A stretch of DNA of 64,000 nucleotides from Macrostomum lignano (GCA_002269645.1 NIVC01000095.1:372001-436000), one strand, 5' to 3'. Positions 10,373-41,014 are shown, numbered from the stretch's first letter. Program-made: numbers and translations. Notes: a model not told the origin generated them from the letters alone.

Positions 10373-11157
10373 TATTTGACTACATTTTACATATTTATAT
10401 TCATATTTATAAGGAAGGTTTCGAAATTTCATATTTTTACATCTTGAGACATCCAATTGTACTATGGTAGTGTTATCCTGATGATTTTTTAAACTACAAA
10501 GTAATAAATACTGAAGATGGAGATGCAAATTAAACTATAAAATTTTCACACAGAACCCTACAGAGCAAACAGCCCTGACCGTCAGTGTCTAAATTCCGAA
10601 AATCGCTCACTTTTGCCCCGTACAGGGTTTACAGTGTTTAGTCCTCTGTCCAATTAAATTAATTAAACAGAGTTTCTGATTCTCATGGTTTGAGACACGT
10701 CCAGATTTGATGGCGGATATGCATATATCCTATGGGCAATCACTTTCCTGTATGCAGGACTGCCTAAAGAGGTTTGACAGGAAATTTATAAAACTATTTG
10801 GTTTGTATATGTATGAATAGAATCGCTATGAAATAAACAGACGACTGCCATAAAAGCCATCTGGCAATCAGAGAGGAGCAAGCATGCGTTATAAGATTCG
10901 GCTGCTTTTGAAATTGCTTGATTGATGGAATATTTTAAAATATCAAGCACGAAATTTGAAGCTTTTACGAGATTTAAAACAAACAACAAACAGTGTTGAT
11001 TTTGTTAATTTCGACGAGTAGATAATTGATTTGTTTCTTGTTCTGTCTCTTTCATTCTGCGAGTTCGTGTCAAAGCAAAGGCCTACACGACTCTGTTGGT
11101 TCCTTCTTATGTCAGCTGTTTATCCATTGTGACAAGAAACTTTTAGACTCCGGGAGT

Positions 11158-13962: not shown

Positions 13963-14992
13963 GACAGATAAAGCATCGCTTTAGACACCGAAGCCAAAAT
14001 AGGTTTGATGAAACTTCCGAGCAACTTCAAGTATTTAAACTTTGAAAATTTTCATTCTGTCAATGACAATACTGGCTATTGATCTGGGATACCCAGGGAA
14101 GATTGCTAGCCAACCACTGAGCTAATTTGGCTTAACCATCACCAACTTCCCCGTGTCACATGTCACCGCCGCAATGGCAGCGCCAATTTGGCCCTATAGT
14201 TACCCACCGGGGATCTGATTGAACTCTCCTATACAATGTGGAAGTATGTTTTTTTTAGAATATACCCAGTCACCGCAGCCTGTCATGAGTACAATGCACT
14301 CAACGCGCATTGAAAGGTGTCAAAATGCTGGTTCCTCAGAGAGAGCTCTCTATGATGCGGAAGGTGCGAAGTATTTATCCTAAAACTGGGGGGACCTGAC
14401 ACGGCAGTTTCGCATCATTTGCCAAATGTTTAGCGACTCATTGCTCAAGCATAAACTGTAGTCAGTCATCTTGAAGTTACGAGGCATATTATATTATCTT
14501 CTGGCATCGTGTGCTGAGCACTACTCAATCAAGCATATTGACAACAATGACAGAGACCATTCAACCTTGAATGGATTAGCTGTCACTTGAGACACTCTTC
14601 CTTAAAAAATCTGAAATCACAGAAGAGAACAGCTCTGAGCACTGACTGCTCTTATATATCAATTTATCGTGAATCTGATTTATAGGGTGATGCCTGATGA
14701 GGTAAGTAAGTGTAAATTTCTACGCATTATGTCTTATATAACTGCAGCTCGAATGGAATTTTAAACACATTTATTTGTTCAAAAATTTAACCGAATAAGC
14801 GCTATCCGTCACTAAGTAGAGCTTGCGAGGAAAAACAGAATTATAGATATAAACTTATATAATATAATATCACACGCAAATGCAGCTACTATAAGTAGAA
14901 GATAGGATCAAATGTTTGGAGTGATTAGAAACTTCGGTCAATTGTTGATTAAGCGTCCAATTATTGCAAGGGTGATGAAATCCACGGTTTTT

Positions 14993-17900
14993 TTAGGTGA
15001 GGCGCCACTGCATAATGCAGGCGTCTCGGCCGCCAATGCTCATGAGATGTCGGCCGTCGGATGTGAATTTTAGCGCCGTGATTTTTGTTGGCCCGACAAA
15101 GGTGTGGCAGTATGCCTGATTGAGGATTTTGGAGCAACTTATGAATGAATTTTCAGTTGAAAATTTTAGAAAATTCACATTGAAATTCCGCAATAAGTTC
15201 CGCAATAAAACGGAGTTAGTTGAAAAAGCAGAGGCCCGAAACAAAATGTTGAGGGAGCACGAGAATTTGCCGCAGGAAGTTTTCCCTCGAGAGGTTTCCC
15301 ACAGGGGGGGTTTCCAGTCGGATTTTCAGGTCAAATCTAGTTTTTAGACTATACTAGAAAAGATTAGACTATAGAGTAGAACTAGACTAGACTGTACTAG
15401 ATTAGAACTAGACTAGAACTTGACTAGACTAGATTATAGCTAGACTAGACTAGATTAGAACTAGATTAGACTAGATTAGAACTAGACTAGTGTAGTGATC
15501 CGCTAGTTTGGTGTTAGGCGTCGCACTATTGTCAGCAGCTTCCTTAGTCCTCGCCCTCGCCCTGGGTTGCTGTCTGCCGCTGGGCAGTCTCCCTCCCCTT
15601 TTGCTGCCTGTTCTCTGGCGCCCCCCTCTTCTCTGCGCTCTTGCTTGCAGCCACGAGCTTCTCTGCTGTGGCCTGCTCTGCGTTTCGTTCCTGTCCTGAG
15701 GTCCCGCTGGCGGCCTGTTTCCCTTGTCTTGTTTTCTAGAAGTCCTAAAGTGCAGTAAACAGTGTTTACTGCACTGTTTACGGGAGGAATCACGTGCTTC
15801 GGGGCCCTTGCCTTCTCTAAGGTAACAGGTGACTCATGTTTCTAAAAATAGATACTGAGTCATGCGGCCCTGTGCACTTTACCCGCAGACCCTGCCTTCT
15901 CTAAGGCGGAGGGTGACGTCAGTTCTAAAAATAGAACAGAGTCACGAGGTCCGGCGCACACTGGTGCAACGGGGATTCCTTGCCTATAAATACGTGCCCC
16001 TCACCCTGGGTTAAGTCAAGGATTTGTCGTCTTTGTCTTCTTGGTCTTCTTATTGGCTTCTTCTTTCTTCTTCTTGTTGTTCTTCTTTAGTCTAGTTTTC
16101 CAGACTTCGTTCAGTTGCCCATTTAAGCTATCTGTAATTGGCCTGACTAAACTTAGACACCCAAGCCTAAGGGAGGCCAAAACTGCCTTCCCAGCCATCC
16201 CCGAGCCCGGCGAGATCTGCTGACCAGGACGCCTTGTTCATTAATCTGCATATTTGCACGCTGTTCTGAGTTCGTTGACTTGTTTATTTCGTTCCGGCGG
16301 GAAGCTCACCTCTCCGAAGGCTGAGACCTGAAAGAACTGGTGGCAGCACTACCTACGCTACTCATAGAAGGCTTCCGGTTGAGAAGACGGAGAGCCCAAA
16401 TCACTGTGCTAGACAGCAGGAGAAGCACAAGTACTTCACTGGTGGCAGCGGTGGGATTTAAAGACCTACCAGGCCACCTCGAGAAAACCCCGAGACAACC
16501 CTAAGTACTTCACTAGAGTCAATTAGAACTAGACTAGACTAGACTAGATTAGAACTAGACTAGACTAGATTAGAACTAGACTAGACTAAATTAAAACTAG
16601 ACTAGACTAGATTAGAACTAGACTAGACTAGATTAGAACTAGACGAGACTAGATTAGAACTAGACTAGACTAGATAAGAACTAGACTAGACTAGATTAGA
16701 ACTAGACTAGACTAGATTAGAACTAGAGTAGACTAGATTAAAACTAGACTAGACTAGATTAGAACTAGACTAGACTAGATTAGAACTAGACTAGACTAAA
16801 TTAAAACTAGACTAGACTAGATTAGAACTAGACTAGACTAGATTAAAACTAGACTAGACTAGATTAGAACTAGACTAGACTAGATTAGAACTAGACTAGA
16901 CTAGATTAGAACTTGACTAGACTAGATTAGAACTAGACTAGACTAGATTAGAACTAGACGAGACTAGATTAGAACTAGACTAGACTAGATTAGAACTAGA
17001 CTAGACTAAATTAGAACTAGACTAGACTAGATTAGAACTAGACTAGACTAGATTAGAACTAGACTAGACTAGATTAGAACTAGACTAGACTAGATTAGAA
17101 CTAGACTAGACTAAATTAAAGTAGATTAGACTAGATTAGAACTAGACTAGACTAGATTAGAACTAGACTAGACTAGATTAGAACTAGACTAGACTAGATT
17201 AGAACTAGACTAGACTAGATTAGAACTAGACTAGACTAGCGATTTACATACGACTGGGTTTGACTTGAAAACTGGAAAACCCCTATGAGAAAATCTCGCT
17301 GCGGGGAAGGCTCGGCGGGTAAAACCTGCGGGAAATTCTCACAGACCCTGCAACCCCTAAACTGGCAATGTCGCAATGTGGCAAGAGAGACAGGAGTCAA
17401 TATTAAATTGAATTGAGTCAAACTAAAAAACTTTCTTACATCAGATTTGGTGCACGGGTACTTATACAGCAGAATGTGGCCATTGTCCAGCCCGACCGCT
17501 AGCAGTTCCCTTTCTATGCAGACATCAACAGACGTAATGCTGGACTCTTGGCTAGACTTGGAGTTCCAAGCACCTGTTGAAAGGTAATTTAATTCTCTTT
17601 GCATAAAAAAATACAACGCTGTCTCCTTTGGTGACCGAAGCTTTTACTGAACTCACCAACGTTGTAATATGCGAATAGGAAATTGCGCGTCTTCCAGCTA
17701 ACATCCCGAACCTTTTCCTCGTCTTCAAGCAAACAAAAGTTTGTCGCATCGCCTGGAAACAGCAACCAGATTGTTTGTTAGATATAGATTATTTTCAAGC
17801 ATGTCTTATTCCTGTAAAGCCAATGAAATATTGGCCATGAACAACTTAAGCAGGAAGTAAGCGAGGAGGAGAGCAGTCATACCCATTTCGCGTTTTTCCC

Positions 17901-20900
17901 GCCGGGATTCTCCCGACATTTTTTTTCGCCGATGTTTTGGTGCCCTTCTAGAACCCTCTAATCCATCAGAAAATCTCATAGATCCTACGTTGCGTCATAC
18001 GCCTTTGCCCATTTTGACTTGTTTATTACTGCGCGCTGATTGGCTGGTTGCTTCCACAGATACTAGAATAACCAGACGGGCCACTCAGGCACATATACTT
18101 AGCAAAACAGCTTTCTACTTTCAGGTCAGTAGCAAAGAAGAAGACATAAGCTATTTAATAAAAAGGCAACTGAAATGACTGATAAGTTTGCAAGGTTGCG
18201 GGGGTAAACAGCTTGCTAATTGGTTCAGCAATAATGTACATTAGCTAGTCCACTGAAATGTACATGGCAGCTTTAGACTTAAATTCCGAGAAAGGCAATA
18301 AAAATTGGGGCGGGGCGGGGCGTAGTGTGGAAAGGCGCGGTTGGAGGGTTTAAGCTGGGGGGGGGGGGGTTAAGAGCCACTAAATGAGCCTTGGCTTTAA
18401 AAATACATTAGAATGCTTCTGTTTAACTTACTACTGAACTGAAAGTAGCTTGTACGCAAATGTGCTGAGTGGCCCATCTAGTTATTCTAGTATCTGTGGT
18501 TGCTTCTCGCTATCGTCGCCTGCTTTTCTTCCCCCCCTTCTTCCCCCTTCTACCGGCATGTTACGAGTACTGTACGAGGGCTACTGTACTCTAAGACCTG
18601 CTGGATGACTGTATCAAAAGGCATCGATCCACGCACTTACAGATGGCCCTCTCTCCACTCGTATTCGTTGCGCAAACAATCAACGATTCGTCGATAAAAT
18701 CTTCGGCAAAATCGAGCGCATCAACGCCGTGCCTTGTGGCCAGCAGCTGACCAGCCGGTTGCCAGGCCCGTACAGTTGGGTCCTCTTCGGTGGGTAGAAA
18801 CCGCAAGAAATGCACGCGACCGTCTGAGCCACCGACCGCAACGGTCTCTTTTGCTGACATGTTTTTAATTTATTGGATAGGTGAAAAGAATTTATAGCTT
18901 CGATAAGACCACGGCTACCGTTCTATAACATCAAAGGACTACCGCTACCGTTCTATAACATCAAAGGACCACCGCTACCGTTCTATAACATCAAAGGACT
19001 ACCGCTACCGTTCTATAACATCAAAGGACTACCGCTACCGTTCTATAACATCAAAGGACTACCGCTACCGTTCTATAACATCAAAGGACTACCGCTACCG
19101 TTCTACATGTATAGCCTCAAAGGACTACCGCTACCGTTCTACATGTATAGCCTCAAAGGACTACCGCTACCGTTCTATAACATCAAAGGACCACCGCTAC
19201 CGTTCTATAACATCAAAGGACTACCGCTACCGTTCTATAACATCAAAGGACTACCGCTACCGTTCTATAACATCAAAGGACTACCGCTACCGTTCTATAA
19301 CATCAAAGGACTACCGCTACCGTTCTAGAACATCAAAGGACTACCGCTACCGTTCTAGAACATCAAAGGACTACCGCTACCGTTCTATAACATCAAAGGA
19401 CTACCGCTACCGTTCTATAACATCAAAGGACTACCGCTACCGTTCTATAACATCAAAGGACTACCGCTACCGTTCTACATGTATAGCCTCAAAGGACTAC
19501 CGCTACCGTTCTACATGTATAGCCTCAAAGGACTACCGCTACCGTTCTATGACATCAAAGGACCACCGCTACCGTTCTATAACATCAAAGGACTACCGCT
19601 ACCGTTCTATAACATCAAAGGACTACCGCTACCGTTCTATAACATCAAAGGACTACCGCTACCGTTCTATAACATCAAAGGACTACCGCTACCGTTCTAG
19701 AACATCAAAGGACTACCGCTACCGTTCTATAACATCAAAGGACTACCGCTACCGTTCTATAACATCAAAGAACTACCGCTATCGTTCTATAACATCAAAG
19801 GACTACCGCTACCGTTCTATAACATCAAAGAACTACCGCTACCGTTCTATAACATCAAAGGACTACCGCTACCGTTCTACATGTATAGCCTCAAAGGACT
19901 ATCGCTATCGTTCTATAACATCAAAGGACTACCGTTATCGTTCTATAACATCAAAAGACTACCGCTACCGTTCTATAACCGTTCTATTCTTGGTGGGCGC
20001 CCCTATATATCTTGGGCAGGTGGATACCTTTTGGGGCCGATTGGGAGTGGGGGTGCCCTCCTAGGACCTCTGCACCACTGTGCTAGCTACCGCGGCTAAA
20101 ACATCAAGCAACTCACTATGCGACATGGCGATCGCGGACACTTTGCAATAAGCAATGCTACTTTTAAACAGTTCAACCAGATTGCTATTCTCCTCGTACA
20201 GAATGATAATCTCGCCATTTCTCGTGCCAAATATAATGGTGCTGCTCTCGTCCCAGCTGGCGTAGGTAATACACTTTTTCTGTAAACAGGTCAACAATTG
20301 GTGTAAACTGTCAGTCAATCATATCTCAAGATATAAATATCATTCACACACGCTTTCTTTCCTACTAAAAGTAGAAATAAAGGTAAGCACAAATCAGAGC
20401 TACAGAAACCCAGTTAGCCAGTGTGGCTCTCACCTTTAGCACAGTTTTCTGCACGCTGCTATGATTGTCGGCATTAAAGATGCACACCTGGCTGTCGTAT
20501 CCCGCGGTGATGAACAAAGATTCATGCCCGGGCACCAGACTCAGGCTCTGCAGTTGATCGTAGTGACCCTGAGTGATTGGCACGTCGCCAAAAGCGACTC
20601 CTTCCAGCGGGGCCAAGCCCGGCTCGGGACAGAGCGGACAGTCAAGCATGGAGTTTGCCGTTGTGCCAACAATCAGACGGTCCACTTCGGCGCCGCGATG
20701 GGCGCGAATGCACCGGGGCGCGCCCTCCGTGACTGGCAGGCGAAGCTCCGACACTCGGTCCATATTTCGGCCCCACTGCCAGCAGCGGAGGGCGCCGTCG
20801 CGACCGCCTGTTAGAAGCCAGCCGCGGTACAAGCAGAGAGAGAACACCGGACCCTGGAGAGCGGGGTAGTGGGCGAGTGAGCTGGAGTTTGGAAAGGGGG

Positions 20901-23900
20901 AAGGGGTGTCGGATTGGGGTGGCGGCCCGCGGGGGAAGGGGTGGCGGATTTGGGTGGCGGGGGAAGGGGTGTGTTGATGGCGGGTGAAGGTGTGTCGGAT
21001 TGGGGTGGTGGCGGGGGAAGGGGTGTCGGATTGGGGTGGTGGCGGGGAAGGGGTGTCGGATTGGGGTGGTGTCGGGGGAAGGTGTGTCGGATTGGGGTGG
21101 TGGCGGGGAAGGGGTGTCGGATTGGGGTGGTGGCGGGAGAAAATGTGTCGAATTGGAATCACGCTCTCCAGCAGCCAGACAAACCTCGTGGGCATGTTTG
21201 ATATAATTAGTGATAAGGTTGCCGCCGCCGCCCCACACGTAGACGTTGCCATTGGAGTCCCCAGTGACCAGGTCGCCCTGTCTATTGTGCAACAAGCTGA
21301 CAACGTAGCGAGCCTTGAAGAATGTTTGATACTCGCCGGCAGCTTTGATGTTGATGGCGCCCAGAGCTTCGCTATATTCCCACCAGACTGTGTGATCTTT
21401 GCCAACGGTGACAAACAGATTTGGATCCTGAGGATTCACGTCGCAGTCGCACATGATGTCCGTGCCGAGAGGGCTTGAGGCGATTAACGAATGACGCTTT
21501 GAGTCCCAAAGAGCAATCATATGCTCAGGCGGGTCCGAGATGCTTAGCAGGCGGTCCTTCGGTTGGAGAATTGGCAACAGTGATTAATACTTAGTAAGCT
21601 TTGTATAATGTCTATTTTTATTGATTTGTCTATATCTCTATATGTACAACTAACCAGACGAAAACATACGATTACTAGCAGGATGCACTGCAATTCCTAA
21701 GCAAATTTTTACGAAAAAAATCGAATGAAAATTCAAGCATAAAATTGTTACTTTAATTATTATTAGAGTTTGCCTACTGATAAGTAGAAAGTATAGAGTA
21801 TGACATGAAAAGCTTTCAAGGTGGGCAAAGAAATGTTGCAATACGAGAGGCTTCTGGGTGGGGGCTAGGCTTGGTCTAACCATTATTAGCTCAGCTGACA
21901 ACCGTAAATCACTGAGCGGTTAATCTACCGATTTACCTATAATTAAGTGAATTAATAAGTCAGTTTGTGAACTACAGGTCCAGCTACAAAACACCAGAAA
22001 TCAATAAAATTCAACAATCAAAAAAATCAAAAGCTTGAACAATTTTACCCTCAGATCGTCCATGCTGATGTCGCTTTCCAGGGGAAGCTGAAACTGAGTT
22101 CACAACGATTGGCGGGATTCGATTGTGTGCAGAGATTCACGTGAAGGGGTGGAGATTCCGGTAAAGGGGCGGAGATTCCAGTTGAAGGGGCGGAGATTCC
22201 AGTTGAAGGGGCGGAGATTCCAGTTGGAGAGGCGGAGATTCCGGTGAAGGTGGAGGAGATTCCAGTTGAAGGAGGCGGAGATTCCAGTGAAGGTGGAGGA
22301 GATTCCGGTGAAGGGGCGGAGATTCCAGTTGAAGGGGGCGGAAATTCCGAATACGAGAATTTGACCAAATTTATACTTATACTGGGTGATTGGTAAAAAT
22401 CTGGACATGGTTAGTTTTTGCCATAGACAAAATTTAACGAGGCAAATTTATTGAGCTGATGCTTTTGAGCAATACTGGGGGTCTTCCTCACAACTTAAGT
22501 TGTTTTTTTCACTTGTTTGCCCCGTCACGTCTGAGATGCAGTCTCTAAATGAAGAGCAGCGGCGTAAACTGGTTGTACAATATAAAATTGAGCACCCTGG
22601 GCTGAGCAACAATGCAATCGCAAAATATTTTGCTGAGCTTGGTGTCCCAAGATCAACCATTTATGGAATTCTGGATCGCTACTCAGCAACTGGAGAAGAT
22701 TCTGTGCTACGGAAGGAGGGGTCAGGACGACCAGCTACCAAGGTCACTGCCACTTTGATGGAGAAGATGTCAAATGATGCCAGGACGGGTCTGTCCCAGC
22801 GCGAAATTGCACGCAAATATGACATCAGCCAGCCGTACGTCAACGAGATTCTCAAGAAGCAGGGACTAAGTGCATACAAGAAAGAAAAAGTGCCATTTGT
22901 GTCGTTTGAGCAGAAAGAGCGTCAGCGTGTGAGGATTGACAGGCTCTACCGTGCTGTGCTGGCAGGAGATGACGGCGGACTGGACATTGTCATGGACGAT
23001 GAATCGTACTTCTCTCTGTCATCCAATGTCATCCCTGGTAACAGGTTCTATTATGCAACAGCTCGAGGTGATGCACCTGATGAGGTTAGGTGTTCACCCA
23101 GCAAGAAATTTGAGGCCAAAGTCTTGGTCTGGCTGGCCATCAGCAAGAAGGGCATGTCCAAGGTCTTCTTCTGCCACGGCAGCTCAATGAACAAAGAGAT
23201 CTACATAAGAGAGTGCATTCACAAGCGTCTATTGCCATTTATTAAGGAACAGCATGCTGACGGCAACTACCTGTTCTGGCCTGACCTGGCGAGCTGTCAC
23301 TATGCTCGTGACGTCATTGACACATTTGAAGAGGGAGGTGTCAATTTTGTCAGCAAGGAGCTCAATCCTCCAATGTACCACAGCTGCGACCAATTGAGAA
23401 CTTCTGGGGATGTTGAAGCAAAAGGTTTACCATCACAATTGGACGACGGACAGTCTGGAACACCTGGAAAATCGCATTCGCTACTGCCTCCGCCAGGTGG
23501 ATCTGCACTGTGTACAGGAGATGATGACCAATGTCAAGTCCGGGATTCGCCGAGCTCGGGCTAATGGTGTCGGAGCCGTTTGGCAATGAGCCAGACAATC
23601 CCTTATATATTGAACTTAATCCAAGTTAAAAGACATGTGCTCAATTTGTTTATTGTTGTCTTGCTAAAACAAATAAAAATGTCCAGATTTTTACCAATCA
23701 CCCAGTATTTCGCTTCGACAATAATATTTTTCTTATATTTCTACTAACAGTAGAACACGGGGACATATTGCGCAGAAAAAATACTTGCAAAGAACAAAGC
23801 TGAATCCCTTAACTCACCGAAGGCTTGCAAAAGGCCAAACCAACAACTGAACCGTGAAATTGTCCGTCGCCAAGGACGCTAAGCGTCTCCAAGGTGTCCG

Positions 23901-26900
23901 AGCGCCATACTCGAATACACGGCCGCTCGGTGGGCTTTCGATGACCTTGGCCTTGACCGCTGGCCACTGTTAGCCCGTCTGAGTGAACTGAGAGACTGCG
24001 AATTCGAGACGGGGTTGTTGATAAGGAAATTGGATTTGAGAATTATGAGTGTAGAGTGTTACACTTCCTGTAAAAAAGACATAAAAGTGTTAATGTACTA
24101 CTCACATATTTTATTCAGTAGTATACTAAGTAGCATGTATAAAGATATGCGCTGAACCATACATGTATTTTAATCAACCAATCAAAAGAGAGAAAAGTCG
24201 GTCATGCTATTTTTGGCAACCAACCAATCACGCGTGACCTACAATTGTCAAGTTAAACCCCACCTGCGATTCATCATTTGGCTTGCACCCGGTTTGCACC
24301 CGGATGAACTAATCAAAGTCTACCAGCTATGGTAACCAATCATGCGCTTTTACAGTAGACTAGTTGCGCAACTTTCTACCCTGTCATGCTTGACAGCCAC
24401 CGAATCGTGACCCTTTGACATTTACGAAAAAGTGATGGACGAAGTCGAGAGAGGTTCATTTGCCTATAAATACAAGTGGTCCGGAACGGACCCGGAGCCA
24501 AGAAACCGGTCTCCGGAAGGAGAAGGAGCTCCGAAGAGGAAGCTTTAGTCAAGACTTCCTAGATCAACTCGAGACTCGGTCGAGTGACTTGCGGTAAGCC
24601 TTCCTTATTTGCGCCCGTTGTTGTTGAGTCGACTCACTTGTGATATAGTGTTGAGTCTGTTGAGACATTTGAGTCCATTCGAGACTCCATTGGCTGTAGT
24701 CGCCCGAAGGACTACCCTAGTAGATCTTAGAAGATCTGCTAGAGAATACCGGAGCTATACCTAGAGTGCATAGAGGCACTGCTAGAAGAAGGAGGCCTAT
24801 ATTGAACCGCAGTTGGCGCAGGGTACCCATTCTAATTCGAAGCTTCCCATTGGTCCGAACGACAGATACCGGCCGGCGAGAAACAAAGAAGAAATCGGAC
24901 CAGAGCAACAGAGTCTTCCGGAAGATAAACGAGATCTACGGATCCACTGAGAGACCTATTGCGAGAACTACTTGAGGAAGAGAACAGCTCAACCGGATTT
25001 AAGGTAATTGAGTACCTGCAGTTGACTTACTGGGTTGCCTAGCTACAGAGCTAGAAGTGATTGTTCCTTGATTACAGTTGAGGATTGGTAATAAGGAACA
25101 CATCATGAATTGGGATTCAAGAATTATGAATTGGGATTCAAAAACTATGAATTGGGATTCGAGAATTATGAATTGGGATTTGAAAATTTTGAATTATGAT
25201 TCGAGAATTATGAATTGCGATTTGAGAATTATTGAATACAGTCATAGGAGTGAACAAAAAGGATATAGAAGTCTCACCACTGCACATCCGCTGTGTGCTC
25301 TCGGTAGTGCCGCTGCTGATTCTCCTCCAGGTTGAGGATAACCACCAGGTGGCCGCTAAAGTACACAATCTCCTGCGTGCGCAGCGCGTGGATGTTGCTG
25401 CGACAGTCGTTGCCACGGTAACCGTATCTGTGAAGGAACATGTGACGGGACATTGGGGCACCATGTTTGGGGAGCAAAATTTATAATGAAAACAGGCTGA
25501 ATTTTCTGATTTCAAAACTGGGATTTCAGAGCACAAATCCCAATCCCAAATCCCGATCCGGCATCCCATTGATCTGAGATCCCAGATTCCAAATCCCGAT
25601 CCGAAATCCCAGATTTCAGATCCCTACTCCCAGATCTTAAATCCCCGATCTCACATTCCAGATCCCAGATCCCAAATACTACAGGTGGAACAAAAGTCTT
25701 GTCGTCAGTACCTCTAGACAAGCAAACCGGTAAAAACATGAAATATTTTAACTCTAATCAGTAGCGCAGTGTCCATTGTCTGCAATCACGCGCTGGCAGT
25801 GGTCCATGAGCAGATCCACCTGGTCTCGGACGGGCACTTTCGGAGATGCTCCGCAACACCTGCAACGAGGCCTCTTCAACCTCTTGACAGCTGTTGAAGG
25901 TCATGCCGCGGTGTGCGTTCTTCAGCCAGAGGAACAGAAATCGGTTACGCAGGTTCAGATCGGGACTGTAGGGGCTCTTCCAAATTACGGTGACAGAGGA
26001 ATCCCTGAAAGAGTCGTGCAACATGCGGCCGAGCATCGTCCTGTCAGGCTCCAGCTTCGACTGCGCTTTTCCTTAGGCTCGTTGCATGCCCTATAGACAC
26101 TCAATGGTTTTAAGTCTGACTTTGAGTGAGTTTTTCTCGTAGCAAGCCAGTTTTTTAGCAGCTGTTTTGTTTATGACCATTTTTGATTTGAGTGAAAAAT
26201 ATGGAATAATAGCTATTTTTAGCAGAGCTATAGCTTAAACGGCAAGACTTGTGCGCCACCCGAGTACCTATCCCACATTTCAGATCCCAGATCCCAACTC
26301 CCAGATCCCAAATCCTGATCCCACATCACAGATCCCAGATTTCAGATCCCAGATCTCAGATCCCAACTTCCAAATCTATGACCTCAGATCACGGATATTA
26401 AGTCCCAAATACAATTCCCAAGACTCTAAATTCTAGATCCTAAATTTTAGGTTTCACATCCTGAATCCTAAATCCCAAAACCAACACCCAAATCCCAAAT
26501 CCCACATCCCCAATTCCATATCTCAGATCCCAAATCCGAAATTCCAAGCCTGAAATCCCAAAAAGCTCCGCAAACAGAACCTACACCCAGTCCAGTTGCA
26601 GTCGCTGATGCGGCAGGTCGTTGACGCGGACCCGGGCTCGAATCCCGACGGGCAGACGGCCACCCGGACGCTGCCGCGGACTCGAGCGGTCATCGCGCCA
26701 GCTGGCAGCGGGCCAATCTGTTCCACCTCCTCGACGTCGTTTGCCGACTTGTTGGCAGCAGGCGGCGTCTGTCGCGGCGGGGACCGCGGCGTCGCCGTTG
26801 CTTTAAGCTTAGGAGTCGGCGGAGTGGGCGCGCCGAGCAGGCGGTTGGGGCTGGCGGAGTTCGGCCGCGTCGCCGACGAACTGGCAGAGGCGGCTGACGT

Positions 26901-28314
26901 CGGCCGGTTTCGGTGCGCCGGAGACGGGGCGGGCGACGAGGCGGCGGTTGGACTGCCGGATTTGCCGCCGCCGCCGCCGCCTGAGCCGGCACCTGATGAT
27001 TCGGAGGAAGTCGAATTAAAATTCGAAACTGAAAACTTCGGTTGCGCTCAGCGCTTTCTGGGATGCGCTGTGGATGTCTGAGAGGATCGGCTGGTGAGCT
27101 GGGGAGGTCAAAAGTAAAGCCTGGATGTCGGTAGGAAAGCCTGAGGATTGGGATGAGCGGCAGTGAGTGCCTGGATCCGAGGGGGGCGGTGGCCCAGCCA
27201 GAGAATCTTTCTATTTCTCAAAGGAATACTTGACAAAGTTGACATAATTTTTCAAGTAGAAAATAGGCTTTAATGTGACGATACAAGCGTGTTGAACTTA
27301 CCGAGTCGAAAGAATAACTCCAGTGCTTTCATTTCTAAATATTATGTAAATTAATTGGATCTTGAATAAACTAGCTTTTGTTGTAAATATCAAGAACACA
27401 ATATAGCCTTTTTAATAGGATTAGAGCAAATAAAAAATCTTTATAAAAGACGTAAAGTACATGTATGAATGTAAGTGTCGTGGGCTGCCTGGCGCAGTGG
27501 GGCTGAGTGTCGTGGGGTGATTGGAGCTTAAGGGCCGAAGTGGCGTGGAGTGGAGCACGCCAATGTGGTTGGGTGTCGTGGGGTGTTGGGCGCTGTGTGG
27601 TAGAGTGTTGTGGAGTGGCGGGTGCAGTGGGGTTGAGAGTGTTGTGGGGTGGCGGGCGCAGTGCGGTTGAGAGTGTTGTGGGGTGGCGGGCGCAGTGCGG
27701 TTGAGAGTGTTGTGGGGTGGTGGGCGCAGTGGGGTTGAGAGTGTTGTGGGGTAGTGGGCGCAGTGCGGTTGAGAGTGTTGTGGGGTGGCGGGCGCAGTAG
27801 GGTTGAGAGTGTTGTGGGGTGGTGGGCGCAGTAGGGTTGAGAGTGTTGTGGGGTAGTGGGCGCAGTAGGGTTGAGAGTGTTGTGGGGTGGTGGGCGCAGT
27901 AGGGTTGAGAGTGTTGTGGGGTGGCGGGCGCTTCGTAGTGGGTCTTGAATTGAGAGGGCTCTGGGATGGAGGCGGCTCTCTAACTTGTGTTATCTGTGGC
28001 CTCGAGGGCATGGGGAAATGACGGCACTTATAAGTGTTAGTAAAATATAAAAGTTTCTTTTATCAGACAACACCATTTTCGTGAGCAATAAAATGCACAA
28101 ACTTACTCTTTATGCCTCTGAGTAGAGCGGCTTTTCCATTTTTACTGGCATCCGAGACGCCACTTTCTCCACCGCCTCCGCCTCCCTCGTCCATCTGGAG
28201 CTGCTGTTGCGTCGTCGTCAGCGGTGACGTCACACGAATGACGTCACCCGACGAGGACAGAAGGCTGTTAGCAGCCTGCTGCGCGGCGGCCGCCTTCAAA
28301 GCGTCCTCTCGTCG
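14993..28314 (-). CDS. EML: Echinoderm microtubule-associated protein-like (EML/EMAP), single HELP + WD40 (TAPE) domain type
   Basis: Phase-consistent exons (minus): 28314-28107, 27028-26585, 25427-25278, 23995-23818, 21556-21185, 20853-20434, 20279-20117, 18847-18641, 17752-17657, 17573-17440, 15115-14993 (stop TAA). HELP motif LPHQRLQLDWV|YGYRGNDCRSNIH and WD repeats (LVTGDSNGNVYVW, LLTGGRDGALRCW, HLMSIGGRDACIMQW). One 1-bp deletion near 26628 must be assumed. True start unresolved. Confidence 0.9.
15491..16512 (+). mobile_element. LTR-retrotransposon-derived insertion (Gypsy-like LTR, 1022 bp) with internal tRNA-Leu primer binding site
   Basis: Termini TGTAG...TTCA; 4-bp TSD CTAG (15487-15490 and 16513-16516); TATAAA at 15985; TGGTGGCAGCGGTGGGATT at 16440-16458 is complementary to the tRNA-Leu(AAG/TAG) 3' end AATCCCACCGCTGCCA-CCA as I recall it. 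Confidence 0.8.
15790..15990 (+). promoter_or_regulatory. LTR U3 enhancer/promoter: E-box, duplicated AP-1/CRE-MEF2-AP-1 module, TATA
   Basis: CACGTG 15791; TGACTCA 15830; CTAAAAATAG 15842 and 15925; TGAGTCA 15856; TGACGTCA 15914; TATAAA 15985. Confidence 0.55.
18912..19982. repeat. 30-bp minisatellite (AACATCAAAGGACTACCGCTACCGTTCTAT)n with 36-bp variant and 372-bp higher-order duplication, EML intron
   Basis: Visible periodicity; near-identical ORFs at 19107 and 19479. Confidence 0.95.
20893..21140. repeat. G-rich ~30-bp repeat (GGGGAAGGGGTGTCGGATTGGGGTGGTGGC), EML intron
   Basis: Visible; multiple GGGG runs. Confidence 0.85.
22145..22346. repeat. ~21-bp repeat (GGCGGAGATTCCAGTTGAAGG), EML intron
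   Basis: Visible periodicity. Confidence 0.85.
22382..23705 (+). mobile_element. Tc1/mariner DNA transposon, DD37E (TRT-like), full length 1324 bp
   Basis: Perfect 27-bp TIRs CTGGGTGATTGGTAAAAATCTGGACAT (22382-22408) and its complement (23679-23705); TA TSD at 22380-22381 and 23706-23707. Confidence 0.95.
22536..23589 (+). CDS. DD37E transposase, ~351 aa if two 1-bp deletions near 23371 and 23408 are repaired
   Basis: N-terminal HTH and GSGRP motif; catalytic MDDESYF, FWPDLASCH, and after frameshift NPPNVPQLRPIENFWG(M)LKQKVY; 37 residues between second D and E; TGA 23587-23589. Confidence 0.88.
24050..25105 (+). mobile_element. Probable solo LTR (1056 bp), EML intron
   Basis: Termini TGTAG...CATCA, like the 15491 element; flanks TGAG/TGAA (4-bp TSD with one mismatch); the same GAATTATGA-type intron repeat lies on both sides; CCAAT boxes and GCCTATAAATA at ~24462; 3' terminal hairpin. 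Confidence 0.6.
25105..26560. repeat. Degenerate GAATTATGAATTGGGATT and CAGATCCCA/AAATCCCA short-period intronic repeats flanking the EML HELP exon and the mariner remnant
   Basis: Visible at 25105-25240, 25500-25680 and 26270-26560. Confidence 0.7.
25682..26264 (-). mobile_element. Internally deleted mariner-family element (~583 bp) with transposase C-terminal remnant
   Basis: TA flanks at 25680-25681 and 26265-26266; imperfect TIRs (CAGGTGGAACAAAAGTCTTGTCGT vs complement CTCGGGTGGCGCACAAGTCTTGCCGT); minus ORF contains SPYSPDLNLRNRFLFLWLK, a mariner YSPDL-type motif. Confidence 0.75.
27590..27925. repeat. G-rich 34-bp minisatellite (GGGCGCAGTGCGGTTGAGAGTGTTGTGGGGTGGC), EML intron
   Basis: Visible periodicity. 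Confidence 0.9.
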
Positions 28315-28709
28315 CTTTGAAAAGCAATAAAATAGAAGTTGTTACAGTTTTTTATCGAAATAAACAGCATATTTGTAAATAAATTTTTCTAGGAAATTGA
28401 GCTCAGTATATCAAAAATAAAATCAAATAAAATTAGATTACATACGAGCTATAAAAAGTTCATTCGCTTGCAAAAAATAACTTATAAGAAGGTATAACTG
28501 TACCTGAAGTACACAGGGTTACATCTAGCAAATTAAGCTTTAATAACAATAACCAAAAAACTTATATTATCCGGACCAACTGAAGCAAATTATAAAACTG
28601 AATAGGTGGTTGTGCTGTAAATACCTGTACGAGCGCATTGCACCAGGTCCAGAACGGTAATAAACGTATGAGCTATAGGTATTGTTATGGAAATGTGGCA
28701 GCTCAGCAA

Positions 28710-30593
28710 ATGAGGATCTGGGAGGCTGGCCCAGCAACTGAGAATCTGGGAGGCTGGCCCAGCGACTGAGGATCTGGGAGGCTGGCTCAGCAACTCAGGA
28801 TCTGGGAGGCTGGCCCAGCAACTGACACTCTGGGAGGCTGGCCCAGCAACTGAGGATCTGGGAGGCTGGCCCAGCGACTGAGGATCTGGGAGGCTGGCCC
28901 CGCAACTGAGGATCTGGGAGGCTGGCCCCGCAACTGAGGATCTGGGAGGCTGGCCCAGCAACTGAGGATATGGGAGGCTGGCCCAGCAACTGAGGAGCTG
29001 GGAGGCTGGCTCAGCATCTCAGGATCTGGGAGGCTGGCCCAGCAACTGAGGAGCTGGGAGGCTGGCCCAGCAACTGAGGATCTGGGAGGCTGGCCCAGCA
29101 GCTGAGGATCTGGGAGGCTGGCCCCGCAACTGACACTCTGGGAGGCTGGCCCAGCAACTGAGGAGCTGGGAGGCTGGCCCCGCAACTGAGGATCTGGGAG
29201 GCTGGCCCAGCAACTGAGGATCTGGGAGGCTGGCCCCGCAACTGAGGATCTGGGAGGCTGGCCCAGAAACTGAGGATCTGGGAGGCTGGCCCCGCAACTG
29301 AGGATCTGGGAGGCTGGCCCCGCAACTGAGGATCTGGGAGGCTGGCCCAGCAACTGACACTCTGAGAGGCTGGCCCAGCAACTGAGGATCTGGGAGGCTG
29401 GCCCAGGAACTGAGGATCTGGGAGGCTGGCCCAGCAACTGAGGAGCTGGGAGGCTGGCCCCGCAACTGAGGATCTGGGAGGCTGGCCCCGCAACTGAGGA
29501 TCTGGGAGGCTGGCCCCGCAACTGAGGATCTGGGAGGCTGGCCCCGCAACTGAGGATCTGGGAGGCTGGCCCCGCAACTGACACTCTGGGAGGCTGGCCC
29601 CGCAACTGACACTCTGGGAGGCTGGCCCAGCAACTGAGGAGCTGGGAGGCTGGCCTCGCAACTGAAGATCTGAGAGGCTGGCCCAGCAACTGAGGATCTG
29701 GGAGGCTGGCCCAGCAACTGAGGAGCTGGGAGGCTGGCCCCGCAACTGAGGATCTGGGAGGCTGGCCCCGCAACTGAGGATCTGGGAGGCTGGCCCCGCA
29801 ACTGAGGATCTGGGAGGCTGGCCCCGCAACTGAGGATCTGGGAGGCTGGCCCCGCAACTGACACTCTGGGAGGCTGGCCCCGCAACTGACACTCTGGGAG
29901 GCTGGCCCAGCAACTGAGGAGCTGGGAGGCTGGCCTCGCAACTGAAGATCTGAGAGGCTGGCCCAGCAACTGAGGATCTGGGAGGCTGGCCCCGCAACTG
30001 AGGATCTGGGAGGCTGGCCCCGCAACTGAGGATCTGGGAGGCTGGCCCAGCAACTGAGGATCTGGGAGGCTGGCCCCGCAACTGAGGATCTGGGAGGCTG
30101 GCCCCGCAACTGAGGATCTGGGAGGCTGGCCCCGCAACTGACACTCTGGGAGGCTGGCCCCGCAACTGAGGATCTGGGAGGCTGGCCCAGCAACTGAGGA
30201 TCTGGGAGGCTGGCCCCGCAACTGAGGATCTGGGAGGCTGGCCCCGCAACTGAGGATCTGGGAGGCTGGCCCCGCAACTGAGGATCTGGGAGGCTGGCCC
30301 CGCAACTGAGGATCTGGGAGGCTGGCCCCGCAACTGAGGATCTGGGAGGCTGGCCCCGCAACTGAGGATCTGGGAGGCTGGCCCCGCAACTGAGGATCTG
30401 GGAGGCTGGCCCCGCAACTGAGGATCTGGGAGGCTGGCCCCGCAACTGAGGATCTGGGAGGCTGGCCCCGCAACTGAGGATCTGGGAGGCTGGCCCAGCA
30501 ACTGAGGATCTGGGAGGCTGGCCCCGCAACTGAGGATCTGGGAGGCTGGCCCAGCAACTGAGGATCTGGGAGGCTGGCCCCGCAACTGAGGAT
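28710..30593. repeat. Second array of 28-bp family A
   Basis: Same unit and orientation as 11158-13962. Confidence 0.97.
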
Positions 30594-30731
30594 CATGCTG
30601 CCCGTTCAAATAATACCAGAGGCATTTAAAAACTTAGGATAAACGCAGACAGTCTGAGCAATCTAAGCCAGATTTCAGCTCCTTTGGCAGCAAACTCTAG
30701 AGGGAGATCGGCGGCGGTGATTTGCTTGCAT

Positions 30732-33700
30732 CTATTTAATCATTTTCAGTAATTCATTCAGCGGTGCCACCTGCGGCTGCTGCGACTGCGACTTCTTTAA
30801 CTTGCTGAGCAAACTGGAGTTGCCTGAAGCAGCAGATGTCTCATTGCCAGCCTCTTTAACCGGGTCCATATTTCGCGCCTGAATATTGCAGTATTCGTGC
30901 ATTGACTTATATCCTTAGTTCAATAGACTCTTTGGCTATTTTAGTCAGGCAAAATGGATCGGAGAGTTTCATATTTTAGCCTAAATTTTATAAGAATCCA
31001 TTGGCGAGTTTCCTAGAAATTTAGCCTAAATTTTATAAGAATCCATGGGCGAGTTTCCTAGAAATTTAACCTAAATTTTATAAGAATGCATTGGCGAGTT
31101 TCCTAGAAATTTAGCCTAAATTTTATAAGAATCCATTGGCGCGTTTCCTAGAAATTTAGCCTAAATTTTATAAGAATCCATTGGCGCGTTTCCTAGAAAT
31201 TTAACCTAAATTTTATAAGAATCCATTGGCGCGTTTCCTAGAAATTTAGCCTAAATTTTATAAGAATCCATTGGCGCGTTTCCTAGAAATTTAACCTAAA
31301 TTTTATAAGAATCCATTGGCGAGTTTCCTAGAAATTTAGCCTAAATTTTATAAGAATCCATTGGCGCGTTTCCTAGAAACTTAGCCTAAATTTTATAAGA
31401 ATCCATTGGCGCGTTTCTTAGAAATTTAGCCTAAATTTTATAAGAATCCATTGGCGAGTTTCCTAGAAATTTAGCCTAAATTTTATAAGAATCCATGGGC
31501 GAGTTTCCTAGAAATTTAGCCTAAATTTTATAAGAATGCATTGGCGAGTTTCCTAGAAATTTAGCCTAAATTTTATAAGAATCCATTGGCGCGTTTCCTA
31601 GAAATTTAACCTAAATTTTATAAGAATCCATTCGCGCGTTTCCTAGAAATTTAGCCTAAATTTTATAAGAATCCATTGGCAAGTTTTACTAGAAATTTAA
31701 TCTAAATTTTATAAGAATCCATTGGCGAGTTTCCGAGAAATTGCCTGTCGATGCAAAAATAATAAAGAGAAGAAGTTTTTAAAAGACAAACTTTTGGTTT
31801 CTTTATGCTTCCATTCAGTGGAAATCGTTCCTTCACGGAGCTGCAATGTGATATGCTTTGGGACAAATGTGGTACCACTCAGTCCAATACTATTTCACCC
31901 TACGCCGTCTGCCTCTCCCCTCAACCTCTCTCTTCTGCCATTCCCCTCTTTCCCCTCTTGCCTCTCTTCACCCTTCCCCTCTCCCCTCTACCCTCTCTTC
32001 CCTCACCTTCGCTCCCCTCTACCCTCTCTTACTTCTACCCTCTCTTCCCTCACCTTCGCTCCCCTCTACCCTCTCTTACTTCTACCCTCTCTCCCCTCTC
32101 CCCTCTCTCTCCTCTCCCCTCTATTCCCTCTCCCCTCTCTCCCCTCTACCCTCTCTTCCCTCACCTTCGCTCCCCTCTACCCTCTCTCCCCTCTACCCTC
32201 TCTCCCTCTACTCTCTCTCCCCTCTCCCCTCTCTTCTCTCCCCTCTCTCCCCTCTACCCTCTCTCCCTCTACCCTCTCTCCCTCTACCCTCTCTCCCCTC
32301 TCCCCTCTCTCCCCTCTACCCTCTCTCCCCTCTACCCTCTCTCCCTCTACCCTCTCTCCCTCTCCCCTCTCTCCCCTCTCCCCTCTCTCCCCTCTCCCCT
32401 CTCTCCCCTCTCCCCTCTCTCCCCTCTCCCCTCTCTCCCCTCTACCCTCTCTCCCCTCTACCCTCTCTCCCTCTACTCTCTCTCCCTCTCCCTCTCTCCC
32501 CTCTCCCCTCTCTCCCCTCTACCCTCTCTCCCTCTACCCTCTCTCCCCTCTCCCCTCTCTCCCCTCTACCCTCTCTCCCTCTACCCTCTCTCCCTCTCCC
32601 CTCTCTCCCTCTACCCTCTCTCCCTCTACTCTCTCTCCCCTTTACCCTCTATTCCCTCTCCCCTCTCTCCCCTCTACCCTCTCTTCCCTCACCTTCGCTC
32701 CCCTCTACCCTCTCTCCCCTCTACCCTCTCTCCCCTCTACCCTCTCTCCCTCTCCCCTCTCTCCCCTCTCTCCCTCTCCCCTCTACCCTCTCTCCCCTCT
32801 CTCCCCTCTACCCTCTCTCCCTCTACTCTCTCTCCCCTCCACCCTCTATTCCCTCTCCCCTCTCTCCCCTCTACCCTCTATTAGAGTACAGAGAAATTAC
32901 TTATTATAAGAAATAGTAAACGCAAAAAGTACAATGAAACCAAATTAATGCTGACAATAAAAGCAAGCATCTACCTTCCAAGCCAAACTCTTCAACTTGC
33001 TCTGCATCTCCATTCGAGCAGTGGTTGGCGTGTTCTGCTTCTCCGGGCCACCCGAGGCGCGTCGGGCACGTGCTCGAAGAATGTCTCCTGGGCCCGTTCG
33101 AGAAAACTGGTGAACTCGGGCCAGCTGAGGTTTGGTTGCAAATTGTCAGATTATTTGGCTTGTTTGAGTCAGTTCTGACCGTTTTGTTTGAGCCATGCAG
33201 CTCACCTGATGAAATCGTTTCTCTCTGGATCGCACCGTTTCAGCAGACTGTTGAACACGGCTCCGTACACCGGGCAGTCGTGCTTGGCACAGGATTCCAC
33301 AATCTTCGCATGCAGATTGGCATTTGGATAAATGCAGATTGTCCAATACCTGTCTTATAACTCTGGCTACACCTTTCCTTACCCTTCTTCCCACCTCTCT
33401 CCCACACCTCTCCCCAGATCTCTCCCCAGATCTCTCCCCACCCTTCTCCCTACCCCTAACCCTTTTCCCACCCTTCCTCCACATCTCTCCTTAAATCTCT
33501 CCCTACCCTTCTCCCCACCACTCTCCCCACCCCTCTCCCTACCCCTACCCCTCTCCCATCCCTCTCCCCACCCCTCTCCCCATCCCTCTCCCCACCCCTC
33601 TCCCCATCCCTCTCCCCACCCCTCTGCCCACCCCTCTCCCCATCTCTCCTTAGTCGCCGTACCTCAGCCCTGGCGATGCGACCCCTCTTGTCCGTGTCAC

Positions 33701-34822
33701 GCTGCTGCAGGTCGGCTTTCAACGCCGGGATGTCAAAGTAGTTGTGATGCGTCACAAAGTGCTCAACCGCTCGCATCACCAGCTCTTGGTCGCGGTCGTC
33801 CTCTCGCAGCATCTCCGTGGTGGTGATCTCGGTCTCCTGGGCGGCCTCGACGCTGTCTCGCCGGGTCATTCGGTGCGCTTTGCCCAGACAGTCGGCCAGC
33901 TTCTCGTAGTCAATGACGCCGGTCTCGCCGTTGTCAACGTCGCAGGTTCGAGCCAGGAGGCTCTGAAGTCGATCGTTCAACGGCAGCTTCTGCTCCGTCA
34001 CCAGGCGTTGGAGTTCGGCTTTGGCCAGTTCGCCTTCAGAGCTGGCCGCGGTGCGCAGAGCCGTCAGGAAGGAGCGCAGCTTCTGACGACTGACCTCGCG
34101 AAGTGACTGCACCAGCAGACTGCGAAGGTTGTGATCGGTTTTCTGGCGCTCCTGCTCCGCCACTGCGCCGTTGCGATTGAGCAGGCTGAGTGAGCTGCTC
34201 ACTGCTCCGTGGGCGAATGTGGGTTTCAGTGTCAGCGTTAGTGTCAGCATTAGTGTCAGCATTAGTGTCAGCATTAGTGTCAGCATTAGTGTCAGCATTA
34301 GTGTCAGCATCAGTGTCAGAATTAGTGTCAGCATTAGTGTCAGCATTAGTGTCAGCATTAGTGTCAGAATTAGTGTCAGCATTAGTGTCAGCATTAGTGT
34401 CAACTAAAAACTAAAACACACATCATATGCATTATGAACGGGCCTCTTTTTTCTCACATGAAAACTGTGACCCACTGCCAGACAGGGCGGTGCCCCGCGA
34501 CGCAGTCTCGTGTTTGAATTGCAATTTGCCGCCGCCGCCACCAGCGGCTCTTGAAGTCGAAGCCGATGCCGCGTCTCCGCCTGCGTCGTTTGCAGCGGCT
34601 GAAGCCGACGAAGCCAGCGGATCGGACGACTGACGAGTCGATTTGGCTGACAATCGTTGAGCTCTGGCCGATTTCTGCTGCTGCTGGGCTTGCATGGATT
34701 TCGCAGTCCCTGGCCGGCTGCTGCTGGCCGATCTCTGCTGCTGCTGGGCTTGCATGGATTTCGCAGTCCCTGGCCGGCTGCTGCTGGCCGAGCTCGACGC
34801 GGTGGGCATGTCGAATCGAAGT
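30732..34822 (-). CDS. EF-hand-like protein, C1orf87-like; may be the N-terminal part of the EML transcript
   Basis: Exons (minus): 34822-34458, 34201-33663, 33303-33206, 33124-32975 (needs +1 base near 33046, otherwise TGA at 32992), 30878-30732 (stop TAG) or 30878-30771 (GTGGCA donor). EF-hand-like segments [52 protein letters not shown]1orf87 similarity is from memory, not from a search. Confidence 0.65.
30976..31732. repeat. 45-bp minisatellite (TTAGCCTAAATTTTATAAGAATCCATTGGCGCGTTTCCTAGAAAT)n, ~17 units
   Basis: Visible periodicity. Confidence 0.95.
31912..32882. repeat. ~970-bp polypyrimidine tract (CTCTCTCCCCT/CTACCCT units)
   Basis: Almost only C/T on the plus strand. Confidence 0.95.
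33385..33650. repeat. C-rich low-complexity intronic tract (CCCTCTCCCCAC)
   Basis: Visible. Confidence 0.85.
34224..34402. repeat. 12-bp tandem repeat (TAGTGTCAGCAT)n, intronic
   Basis: Visible periodicity. Confidence 0.93.
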
Positions 34823-40909: not shown

Positions 40910-40942
<33 letters not shown>

Positions 40943-40957
40943 TCTTGTCTGCCTGCC

Positions 40958-41014
<57 letters not shown>

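Follow-up and report, generated by a model that had tools for sequence, protein, structure and literature searches.

A probable fused EF-hand–EML gene in the flatworm Macrostomum lignano, with the same domain order in molluscs, deuterostomes and other animals

The window analyzed here is a 64,000-nucleotide stretch of the Macrostomum lignano genome (GCA_002269645.1 NIVC01000095.1:372001-436000), with positions counted from its first letter. Its minus strand carries, between 34809 and 14993, exons of an EF-hand module resembling C1orf87, followed by exons of a protein of the EML family. In the original prediction, made from the sequence alone, this region was considered either a gene for an EF-hand–EML fusion protein or a trans-spliced unit of two genes. 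The analysis described below makes it likely that it is one 17-exon gene encoding a fused protein of about 1250 aa. The minus strand was read from 35200 to 14000, all three frames were translated, and exon models were made with explicit splice sites and phases. The resulting features are listed from 5' to 3' of the gene.

34809-34458, minus strand: exon A1, ATG and low-complexity Ser/Ala/Gln-rich N-terminus, no Pfam family matched; donor CAT|gtgaga, phase 1
34204-33663, minus strand: exon A2, SRQKLR...RRDSV...EF-hand loop; donor GAG|gtacgg, phase 0
33303-33206, minus strand: exon A3, 98 nt, phase 0 to 2, second EF-hand helix and start of loop B
33124-32975, minus strand: exon A4, end of the module and disordered tail, with a 1-nt frame break; donor AAG|gtagat (32975/32974)
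30878-30771, minus strand: exon X (candidate), 108 nt, phase 0 to 0; acceptor ttcag|GCG, donor CAG|gtggca at 30771/30770
30770-30732, minus strand: read-through tail of exon X, ending in TAG at 30734-30732, with ATTAAA at 30740-30735
28314-28107, minus strand: exon B1, phase 0 to 1, RREDALKAAAAQQ...ALLRGIK, part of the linker, no Pfam family matched; acceptor ttttcaaag|CGA
26992-26585, minus strand: exon B2, phase 1 to 2, basic Ser/Pro-rich linker (RPTSA, RPNSA) and start of HELP, ending ...LDW
25427-25278, minus strand: exon B3, 150 nt, VYGYRGNDCRSN..., HELP motif and start of propeller 1
23995-23818, minus strand: exon B4, propeller 1
22087-22049, minus strand: exon B5, 39 nt (LPLESDISMDDLR), a small insertion; Lingula has a similar one in the same place
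21556-21185, minus strand: exon B6, propeller 1 (tblastn E 1e-31 to 1e-37; Pfam Beta-prop_EML 267 bits)
20853-20434, minus strand: exon B7, end of propeller 1 and start of propeller 2 (tblastn E 1e-22 to 1e-30)
20279-20117, minus strand: exon B8, propeller 2
18853-18641, minus strand: exon B9, propeller 2
17752-17657, minus strand: exon B10, propeller 2
17573-17440, minus strand: exon B11, 134 nt, propeller 2, with tblastn support
15115-14993, minus strand: exon B12, 123 nt, ending ...IMQWRLT and then TAA (14995-14993); Pfam Beta-prop_EML_2 179 bits

The EF-hand exons and the EML exons are co-oriented, as had been noted. The EML part consists of 12 exons, from 28314 to the TAA at 14995-14993, and its first recognizable exon, B1, begins at the phase-0 acceptor that had been described for it; upstream of this exon only 9 further codons are open, none of them an ATG. 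When one N is added at each of two frame breaks, located in exons A4 and B2, the 17 exons join into a single open reading frame (ORF) of 1251 aa with zero stops, and the same ORF without exon X (1215 aa) is also stop-free. All 16 introns are of the GT-AG type and keep the conserved phases, and no further stops or indels occur across the 1251 codons. The RP-x-S/T-A motifs, which had been pointed out in both halves (RPGTA twice, RPTSA, RPNSA), are present and commoner than in shuffled sequences (P ~2e-4 and ~8e-4 for the two regions); however, the RPGTA pair represents one event, a 60-bp tandem duplication within 34664-34795 of exon A1 that doubled the peptide bearing the motif. A separate observation concerns the start of exon A2, where tandem acceptors lie 3 nt apart on the minus strand, at 34204 and 34201 (gag/cag; cggag|cag|TG). 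Both fit the phase-1 donor of exon A1, and a NAGNAG alternative splice with or without one residue is possible.

As assembled, exon A4 runs into a TGA at 32994-32992; shifted by one base, it is open to AAG|gtagat and this donor is then in phase 0. The break is located at a GCCCGG site (CCC run 33045-33047). A profile search with the module recovered an M. lignano sequence of 132 aa, P0087 (UniRef100_A0A1I8I2U3), that is 100% identical to the window and spans the junctions A2|A3 and A3|A4; by this identity alone the window would be assigned, almost certainly, to M. lignano. It reads ...PRVAPEKQ...SLAW, that is, in the shifted frame through the break and up to the last full codon before the donor. 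The earlier claim that this exon ends in a phase-0 donor once one base is restored is therefore confirmed by an independent sequence and, because P0087 reads across the break in the shifted frame, the TGA at 32992 does not represent a genuine stop there. Comparison of the two sequences indicates that the apparent stop results from a 1-nt deletion and that the true frame of A4 is the shifted one. The A4 tail gave no significant local alignment with the conserved block that follows the module, in either frame, so the frame is assigned from P0087 and from the conserved introns. Also considered was a weak donor inside A4 (CGG|GTGGCC), which has phase 0 if the frame is read as assembled and would lead straight to exon X without any frameshift; it was rejected, since P0087 reads through it in the shifted frame and since the strong AAG|gtagat matches the conserved intron position. 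The second 1-nt break, not reported previously, lies in exon B2 at GCCCGGG (26631-26637), inside the HELP span, between '...PSGFEPG' and 'RVNDLPHQRLQLDWV' (also given as 'RVNDLPHQRLQLDWVYGYRG'). Both breaks thus fall on GCCCGG, of which there are four sites in the coding sequence (CDS).

The upstream half contains a C1orf87-like module of about 200 aa, the second half of which is an EF-hand pair, matched by the Pfam family DUF5580_M (PF20742) with 28.3 bits (cut-off 24, E 1.8e-6); the N-terminal domain of DUF5580 (PF17743) was not found in the window by Pfam. Exon A2 holds the first three quarters of this conserved N-terminal module and matches fused homologues with tblastn E values of 1e-9 to 3e-19. 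In the AlphaFold model of P0087, pLDDT is at least 90 over residues 30-100 and the tail is disordered; the predicted EF-hand pair has a fold of paired helix-loop-helix units with short bridging strands. Loop B has D1, E3, N5 and E12 and is canonical across the family (D-x-[DE]-x-N-...-E, within RCD...SWPE). The best matches in structure and profile searches were generic EF-hand proteins (calmodulin, lobes of CDPK, axonemal EF-hand proteins). One of the candidates, 8snb_3J, a 592-aa EF-hand protein from the doublet microtubule of sea-urchin sperm, was considered as a C1orf87 orthologue and rejected, its similarity being of the generic EF-hand kind only. With the amphioxus C1orf87-like protein as query, the PDB gave not one chain at E<=0.001.

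In the downstream half, HELP (PF03451) was detected with 57.7 bits (cut-off 27) by a motif that spans the B2 frame break, and the two propeller families Beta-prop_EML (PF23409) and Beta-prop_EML_2 (PF23414) with 267 bits (cut-off 88.2) and 179 bits (cut-off 90), respectively. The predicted protein therefore has HELP and both beta-propellers, the TAPE domain by which the EML/EMAP family is recognized. EML1-4 have an N-terminal coiled-coil trimerization domain; their propellers bind tubulin and the basic Ser/Pro-rich linker binds the microtubule lattice. The window shares with EML1-4 and with the sea-urchin 77-kDa EMAP the core of HELP and tandem beta-propellers and the basic Ser/Pro-rich region before it. 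It differs from EML1-4 by the EF-hand module at its N-terminus, and its N-terminus and the linker of about 250 aa match no Pfam family at E<=1, no dedicated coiled-coil predictor having been run.

The nearest relatives of the EML half have the module as well. The 14 best hits of a search with this half (28-38% identity, E 1e-90 to 1e-148, 778-1473 aa) came from molluscs (Mytilus, Pinctada, Pecten, Argopecten, Haliotis, Ylistrum, Crassostrea, Babylonia), other lophotrochozoans (Lingula, Owenia, Tubulanus), and deuterostomes (Branchiostoma, Strongylocentrotus, Diadema). Ten of these 14 proteins carry precomputed PF20742 together with HELP and the EML propellers and, judged by sequence, the SRQRLR...SWPEF module is N-terminal in all of them save a partial Owenia model. 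In the homologues, the module reads SRQRLR...GRDSV...EF loop...RCD...SWPEFLSFLEKAQ and is followed by a long low-complexity linker and then by HELP, the module lying around residues 190-280 and HELP around 530. The upstream protein of the window aligns end to end with this module (31-37% identity, 22 invariant columns). Single homologue proteins, used in tblastn, matched 34169-33013 as well as 25459-14999, with order and strand preserved. An exhaustive search with the module gave 45 other cluster representatives, 17 of them with an EML half, which is always C-terminal to the module; module-then-EML proteins make up 9 of the 12 best hits. Further taxa with the fused gene are Saccostrea, Mactra, Lineus, Watersipora (a bryozoan), Patella, Physella, Lottia, Plakobranchus, Acanthaster, and Polypterus (bichir), and the layout as a whole is spread over molluscs, nemerteans, a bryozoan, a brachiopod, echinoderms, amphioxus, and Polypterus. 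A search of lophotrochozoan proteomes for the same domain order had been proposed as a check, and this order was indeed found across molluscs, brachiopod, nemerteans, and bryozoan. The Owenia module-only and EML-only partial models sit on one contig and look like one split gene. The Patella 'isoform X3' (374 aa) was examined as a possible EF-hand-only isoform and rejected, as it is a C-terminal propeller fragment. In Polypterus senegalus, KAG2470845.1 (P0100, 'EMAL2, partial') has the module and then EML. Some early-branching vertebrates may therefore still have the fused gene, although in tetrapods the best hits (EML3) are without the module.

A single-sequence word-indexed search with the EF-hand half gave no hits at all and so missed P0087 in spite of its 100% identity, whereas the profile search found it; negative results from that index are thus unreliable. 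An exhaustive search of representatives with P0087 found no longer model for this locus. The paralogue P0097 (UniRef100_A0A1I8IEK1), from the same species, is one annotated model with a degenerate module, a Ser-rich linker, and then ...LDWVYGYRGNDCRKN (also given as '...RLELDWVYGYRGNDCRKN'). It has, like the window, the order module, linker, HELP; unlike the window, its EF loops are degenerate and the model ends just after HELP, and the identity between the two modules is about 35%. The first ~1000 residues of P0097 are probably a mis-merged upstream coiled-coil (DUF4485) gene.

Gene structure is shared between the window and the fused genes of other animals. The fused proteins of Pecten (L001), Haliotis (L002), and Branchiostoma (L003) were mapped by exact spliced alignment on the loci that encode them. 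The window, Pecten, Haliotis, and amphioxus all have a phase-0 intron behind the exiting helix of the first EF-hand (...GRI..E|). The next exon, equivalent to A3, has 98 nt and phases 0 to 2 in the window, Pecten, and amphioxus, and 95 nt in Haliotis. The SWPEF exon starts in phase 2, and its phase-0 donor lies 48-59 codons after SWPEF in the homologues and 50 codons after it in the window with one base added. The linker exons, which go from phase 0 to 1 and finally from 1 to 2, ending ...LDW|, are common to the window and the three fused genes, and the VYGYRG exon has 150 nt and the same phases in all four. Among the terminal exons, the one of 134 nt matches Haliotis with the same phases and the one of 123 nt matches the last exon of both Pecten and Haliotis. 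Such a shared pattern of introns, as predicted here, would not be expected from two independent neighboring genes.

A fusion is preferred to a two-gene unit because homology extends to both halves, the order of the domains is conserved, introns agree in position and phase, and the frame is open across the junctions. The nearest EML relatives have the module in the same order, single homologue proteins match both halves collinearly, the introns are common to the fused genes of Pecten, Haliotis, and amphioxus, P0087 confirms the frame of A4 with one base restored, and the paralogous M. lignano locus is annotated as fused. The exons would be joined in the mRNA, with or without exon 30878-30771. 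It is proposed that this gene is the orthologue, in a flatworm, of an old EML paralogue of bilaterians in which the layout of module, linker, HELP, and propellers is constant. In the order of the predicted protein, a low-complexity N-terminus would be followed by the C1orf87-like module, a disordered, basic Ser/Pro-rich linker of about 250 aa, and HELP with two EML beta-propellers.

The middle of the gene needs separate consideration. The gap between the TAG at 30732 and exon B1 at 28314 is 2418 bp, of which 1889 bp is repeat, in agreement with the earlier description of a 2.4-kb gap consisting mostly of minisatellite. Two other minisatellites, together spanning 30975-32879, take up most of the intron between A4 and X.

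28706-30594: 28-bp minisatellite, 67.5 copies, 1889 bp, most of the X-B1 intron
30975-31742: minisatellite with a 45-bp unit, A4-X intron
31912-32879: GA-rich minisatellite with 16/47-bp units, A4-X intron

Outside these minisatellites, the interval between A4 and B1 contains 19 in-frame AG...GT cassette candidates, and exon X is the only one with a decent acceptor and a hydrophilic, linker-like product. Its in-frame phase-0 donor was found where it had been predicted. Exon X resembles the conserved post-module block (DP..E...LLSKLKK) with z 2.7, a score reached in 3 of 300 shuffles; the A4 tail is, however, the positional equivalent of the mollusc block, so the resemblance of exon X may be a local repeat or chance. 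Skipping of exon X keeps the frame. We consider its inclusion in the mRNA rather probable. The ATTAAA and the TAG at 30732 could serve as an alternative polyadenylation site giving an EF-hand-only isoform, and a start of EML at MDPVKE or spliced leader (SL) trans-splicing could give additional or separate isoforms beside the fused mRNA.

A number of observations weigh against a single fused gene with a calcium-binding module. The junctions 32975>30878, 30771>28314, and 32975>28314 are predictions, and UniProt has only the 132-aa fragment model for the locus. The assembled sequence has two frame breaks, and it is only for that of A4 that an independent sequence from M. lignano demonstrates its absence. 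The donor of exon X (CAG|gtggca) is weak and the acceptor of B1 is AAG, not CAG; AAG is, however, the acceptor in 3 of the model's 16 cis introns, one of which P0087 validates. The ATTAAA overlaps the end of the read-through ORF of exon X. Loop A of the EF-hand pair, canonical in molluscs, has in the window Arg at ligand position 5, and EF-hand_7 scores 22 bits, under the Pfam cut-off of 30. Finally, SL trans-splicing affects about 30% of the genes in M. lignano, and operons have been called in this species at repeat-adjusted gaps < 1 kb (PMC8629364), a limit below which the X-B1 gap would fall.

This last point is the basis of an alternative in which one transcription unit gives two mRNAs in an operon-like manner, the EF-hand mRNA ending at TAG 30732 with its ATTAAA and the EML mRNA receiving the SL at 28314 or 30878. 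The M. lignano SL has 35 nt and ends in ATG (PMC8629364), which would be in frame at either of these phase-0 acceptors; the ATTAAA at 30740-30735 stands directly before the TAG, and the 2418-bp gap falls to about 0.5 kb without the minisatellite. The acceptors themselves agree less well, since the trans-splice acceptor motif of M. lignano is [T/C]TNCAG (PMC8629364), which the B1 acceptor (caaag) misfits and that of exon X (attcag) fits in part. There is no AATAAA anywhere in the interval, and no SL RNA gene or SL sequence was found within the window. The ORF and phases are compatible across all junctions, and the fused layout is kept in every close relative and in the paralogous M. lignano model. 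With these points on both sides, two mRNAs appear unlikely. A related variant, in which an ancestrally fused gene is now expressed partly or wholly as EF-hand-only and EML-only messages, with the EML start codon coming from the ATG of the leader, is given an equally small chance. If the two-message reading were true, the locus would represent gene fission in progress, mediated by trans-splicing.

The frame breaks raise the question of whether this copy is a decaying pseudogene in which one or both breaks are real. Two breaks in a CDS of 3.7 kb would fit this, and M. lignano is mentioned as a hidden polyploid (PMC10468722), whose redundant copies would permit degeneration of one of them. However, no other stops or indels are found over the 1251 codons, the 16 introns keep GT-AG and phases, and the A4 break is absent from P0087. 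The two breaks share the GCCCGG context, occupying two of only four such sites, and a young Tc1/mariner copy in an intron of the gene likewise has a single 1-nt break in a homopolymer. Breaks in this pattern are typical of long-read assembly errors, and both are most probably single-base deletions of this kind, for B2 by inference only. Decay of the gene is accordingly quite unlikely. An independent EML gene with its own promoter, starting at the Met of MDPVKE (~30869) and leaving the EF-hand gene as a separate upstream neighbor, is very improbable: an in-frame ATG does lie three codons into exon X, but the exon begins at a good acceptor (ttcag|) rather than at a recognizable start, its sequence resembles the post-module block of the EF-hand half in homologues, and, partial or split models aside, no relative has this EML subfamily without the module.

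The predicted fused gene at this locus belongs to a layout that is known but uncharacterized and is predicted in many animal phyla, to which the window adds a flatworm member. It had been stated that no characterized EF-hand–EML architecture was known. This holds for the literature, where searches on C1orf87/DUF5580 together with EML or Macrostomum returned gene lists only and no paper describing the architecture, and where no experimental characterization of the fused proteins was found; it does not hold for the databases, in which the architecture is predicted in >25 species, usually under the name 'EML2-like'. Examples of such 'EML2-like / EF-hand domain-containing' proteins are those of Pecten maximus (P0004), Haliotis rufescens (P0006), Lingula anatina (P0003), and Tubulanus (P0011) and, in deuterostomes, Branchiostoma (P0012), Strongylocentrotus purpuratus (LOC581284, P0013), and Polypterus (KAG2470845.1). 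The window resembles them in domain order, in 31-38% identity over both halves, in intron positions and phases, and in several exon lengths. It differs from them in a more degenerate loop A (the Arg at position 5), a different linker sequence, fewer propeller introns, and the extra small exon B5, which is present in Lingula as well.

The proteins of the C1orf87 (DUF5580) family share with the window the DUF5580_M domain of an EF-hand pair; unlike it, they are standalone proteins of 546-666 aa with this domain in the middle. Their identity to the module is ~25-30% (E ~1e-7), compared to E values of 1e-19 for the fused EMLs. Standalone C1orf87-like proteins were found in Ptychodera, Saccoglossus, and Branchiostoma and, since amphioxus has both a fused EML and a C1orf87-like gene, the two are paralogues and not the same gene. 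Replacement of the EML N-terminus by another folded domain has a precedent in the insect DCX-EMAP proteins (CG42247-type; Cimex P0043 with doublecortin PF03607), which show N-terminal domain swapping in the EML family; these carry doublecortin and not an EF-hand pair, and they belong to a different EML subfamily (27% identity).

As to function, the propellers and the basic linker of the fused protein might bind microtubules or tubulin, as in other EMLs, and the EF-hand pair might make microtubule binding or partner recruitment Ca2+-sensitive. Human C1orf87 is found in ciliated-cell expression modules and is localized to cilia by the Protein Atlas (PMC3338421), and it is listed among the proteins of motile ciliated cells (PMC12772120). 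By analogy with this cilia-associated paralogue of the module, the fused protein's site of action is probably in ciliated cells or sperm; a role in cilia or flagella is plausible but unproven. A calcium-sensing microtubule or ciliary protein, as was initially suggested, is a reasonable view. The fusion of a sister domain of C1orf87 to a microtubule-binding EML in many phyla hints, by a Rosetta-stone argument, that C1orf87 itself acts on or near microtubules. The fused gene would represent an EML paralogue of ancient origin and wide distribution, in which a C1orf87-like EF-hand module takes the place of the usual coiled coil. The fragment entry of 132 aa and an unannotated EML would become one gene model of about 1250 aa in a regeneration model organism. 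RNAi, in situ hybridization, and transgenesis exist for M. lignano.

Repeats and mobile elements are frequent in the window, where many introns carry differing minisatellites. The 28-bp unit (GCAACTGAGGATCTGGGAGGCTGGCCCC and variants) occurs at three places, 11123-14026, 28706-30594, and 41581-41995; it is without a stop codon in three sense (minus-strand) frames and therefore gives long spurious ORFs. The B4-B5 intron contains a Tc1/mariner-type transposon (22379-23705, ORF on the plus strand) with perfect terminal inverted repeats of ~30 bp (ATACTGGGTGATTGGTAAAAATCTGGACAT); its transposase ORF is nearly intact, with a single 1-nt homopolymer shift near '...ELNPP/NVPQLRPIENFW'. In the B2-B3 intron, a relic of the C-terminus of a mariner-like transposase (…SPYSPDLNLRNRFLFLWLKNAHRGMTFNSCQEVEEA…) lies at 25761-26072 on the minus strand, flanked by 'gggatctgggat' microsatellite-like repeats. 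Outside the fused gene, a two-exon homeobox gene is located at 574-1059 and 3841-4203 on the plus strand (homeodomain …GMLRRAVFSDCQRRGLEKVFQRQKYISKPDRKRLADKLGLK / VKIWFQNRRMKWRNSKERE…); judged by eye, this homeodomain looks like the Dbx class. Exons at 40047-41621 on the minus strand resemble a ubiquitin-domain-containing protein (UBTD1/2-like), with no frame break visible over ~250 codons. An ORF at 56440-56823 on the plus strand includes a sequence similar to a WW domain (…WWEFYDTGTGRYYYYNYMTEATLWQKPP…), after which come long low-complexity repeats.

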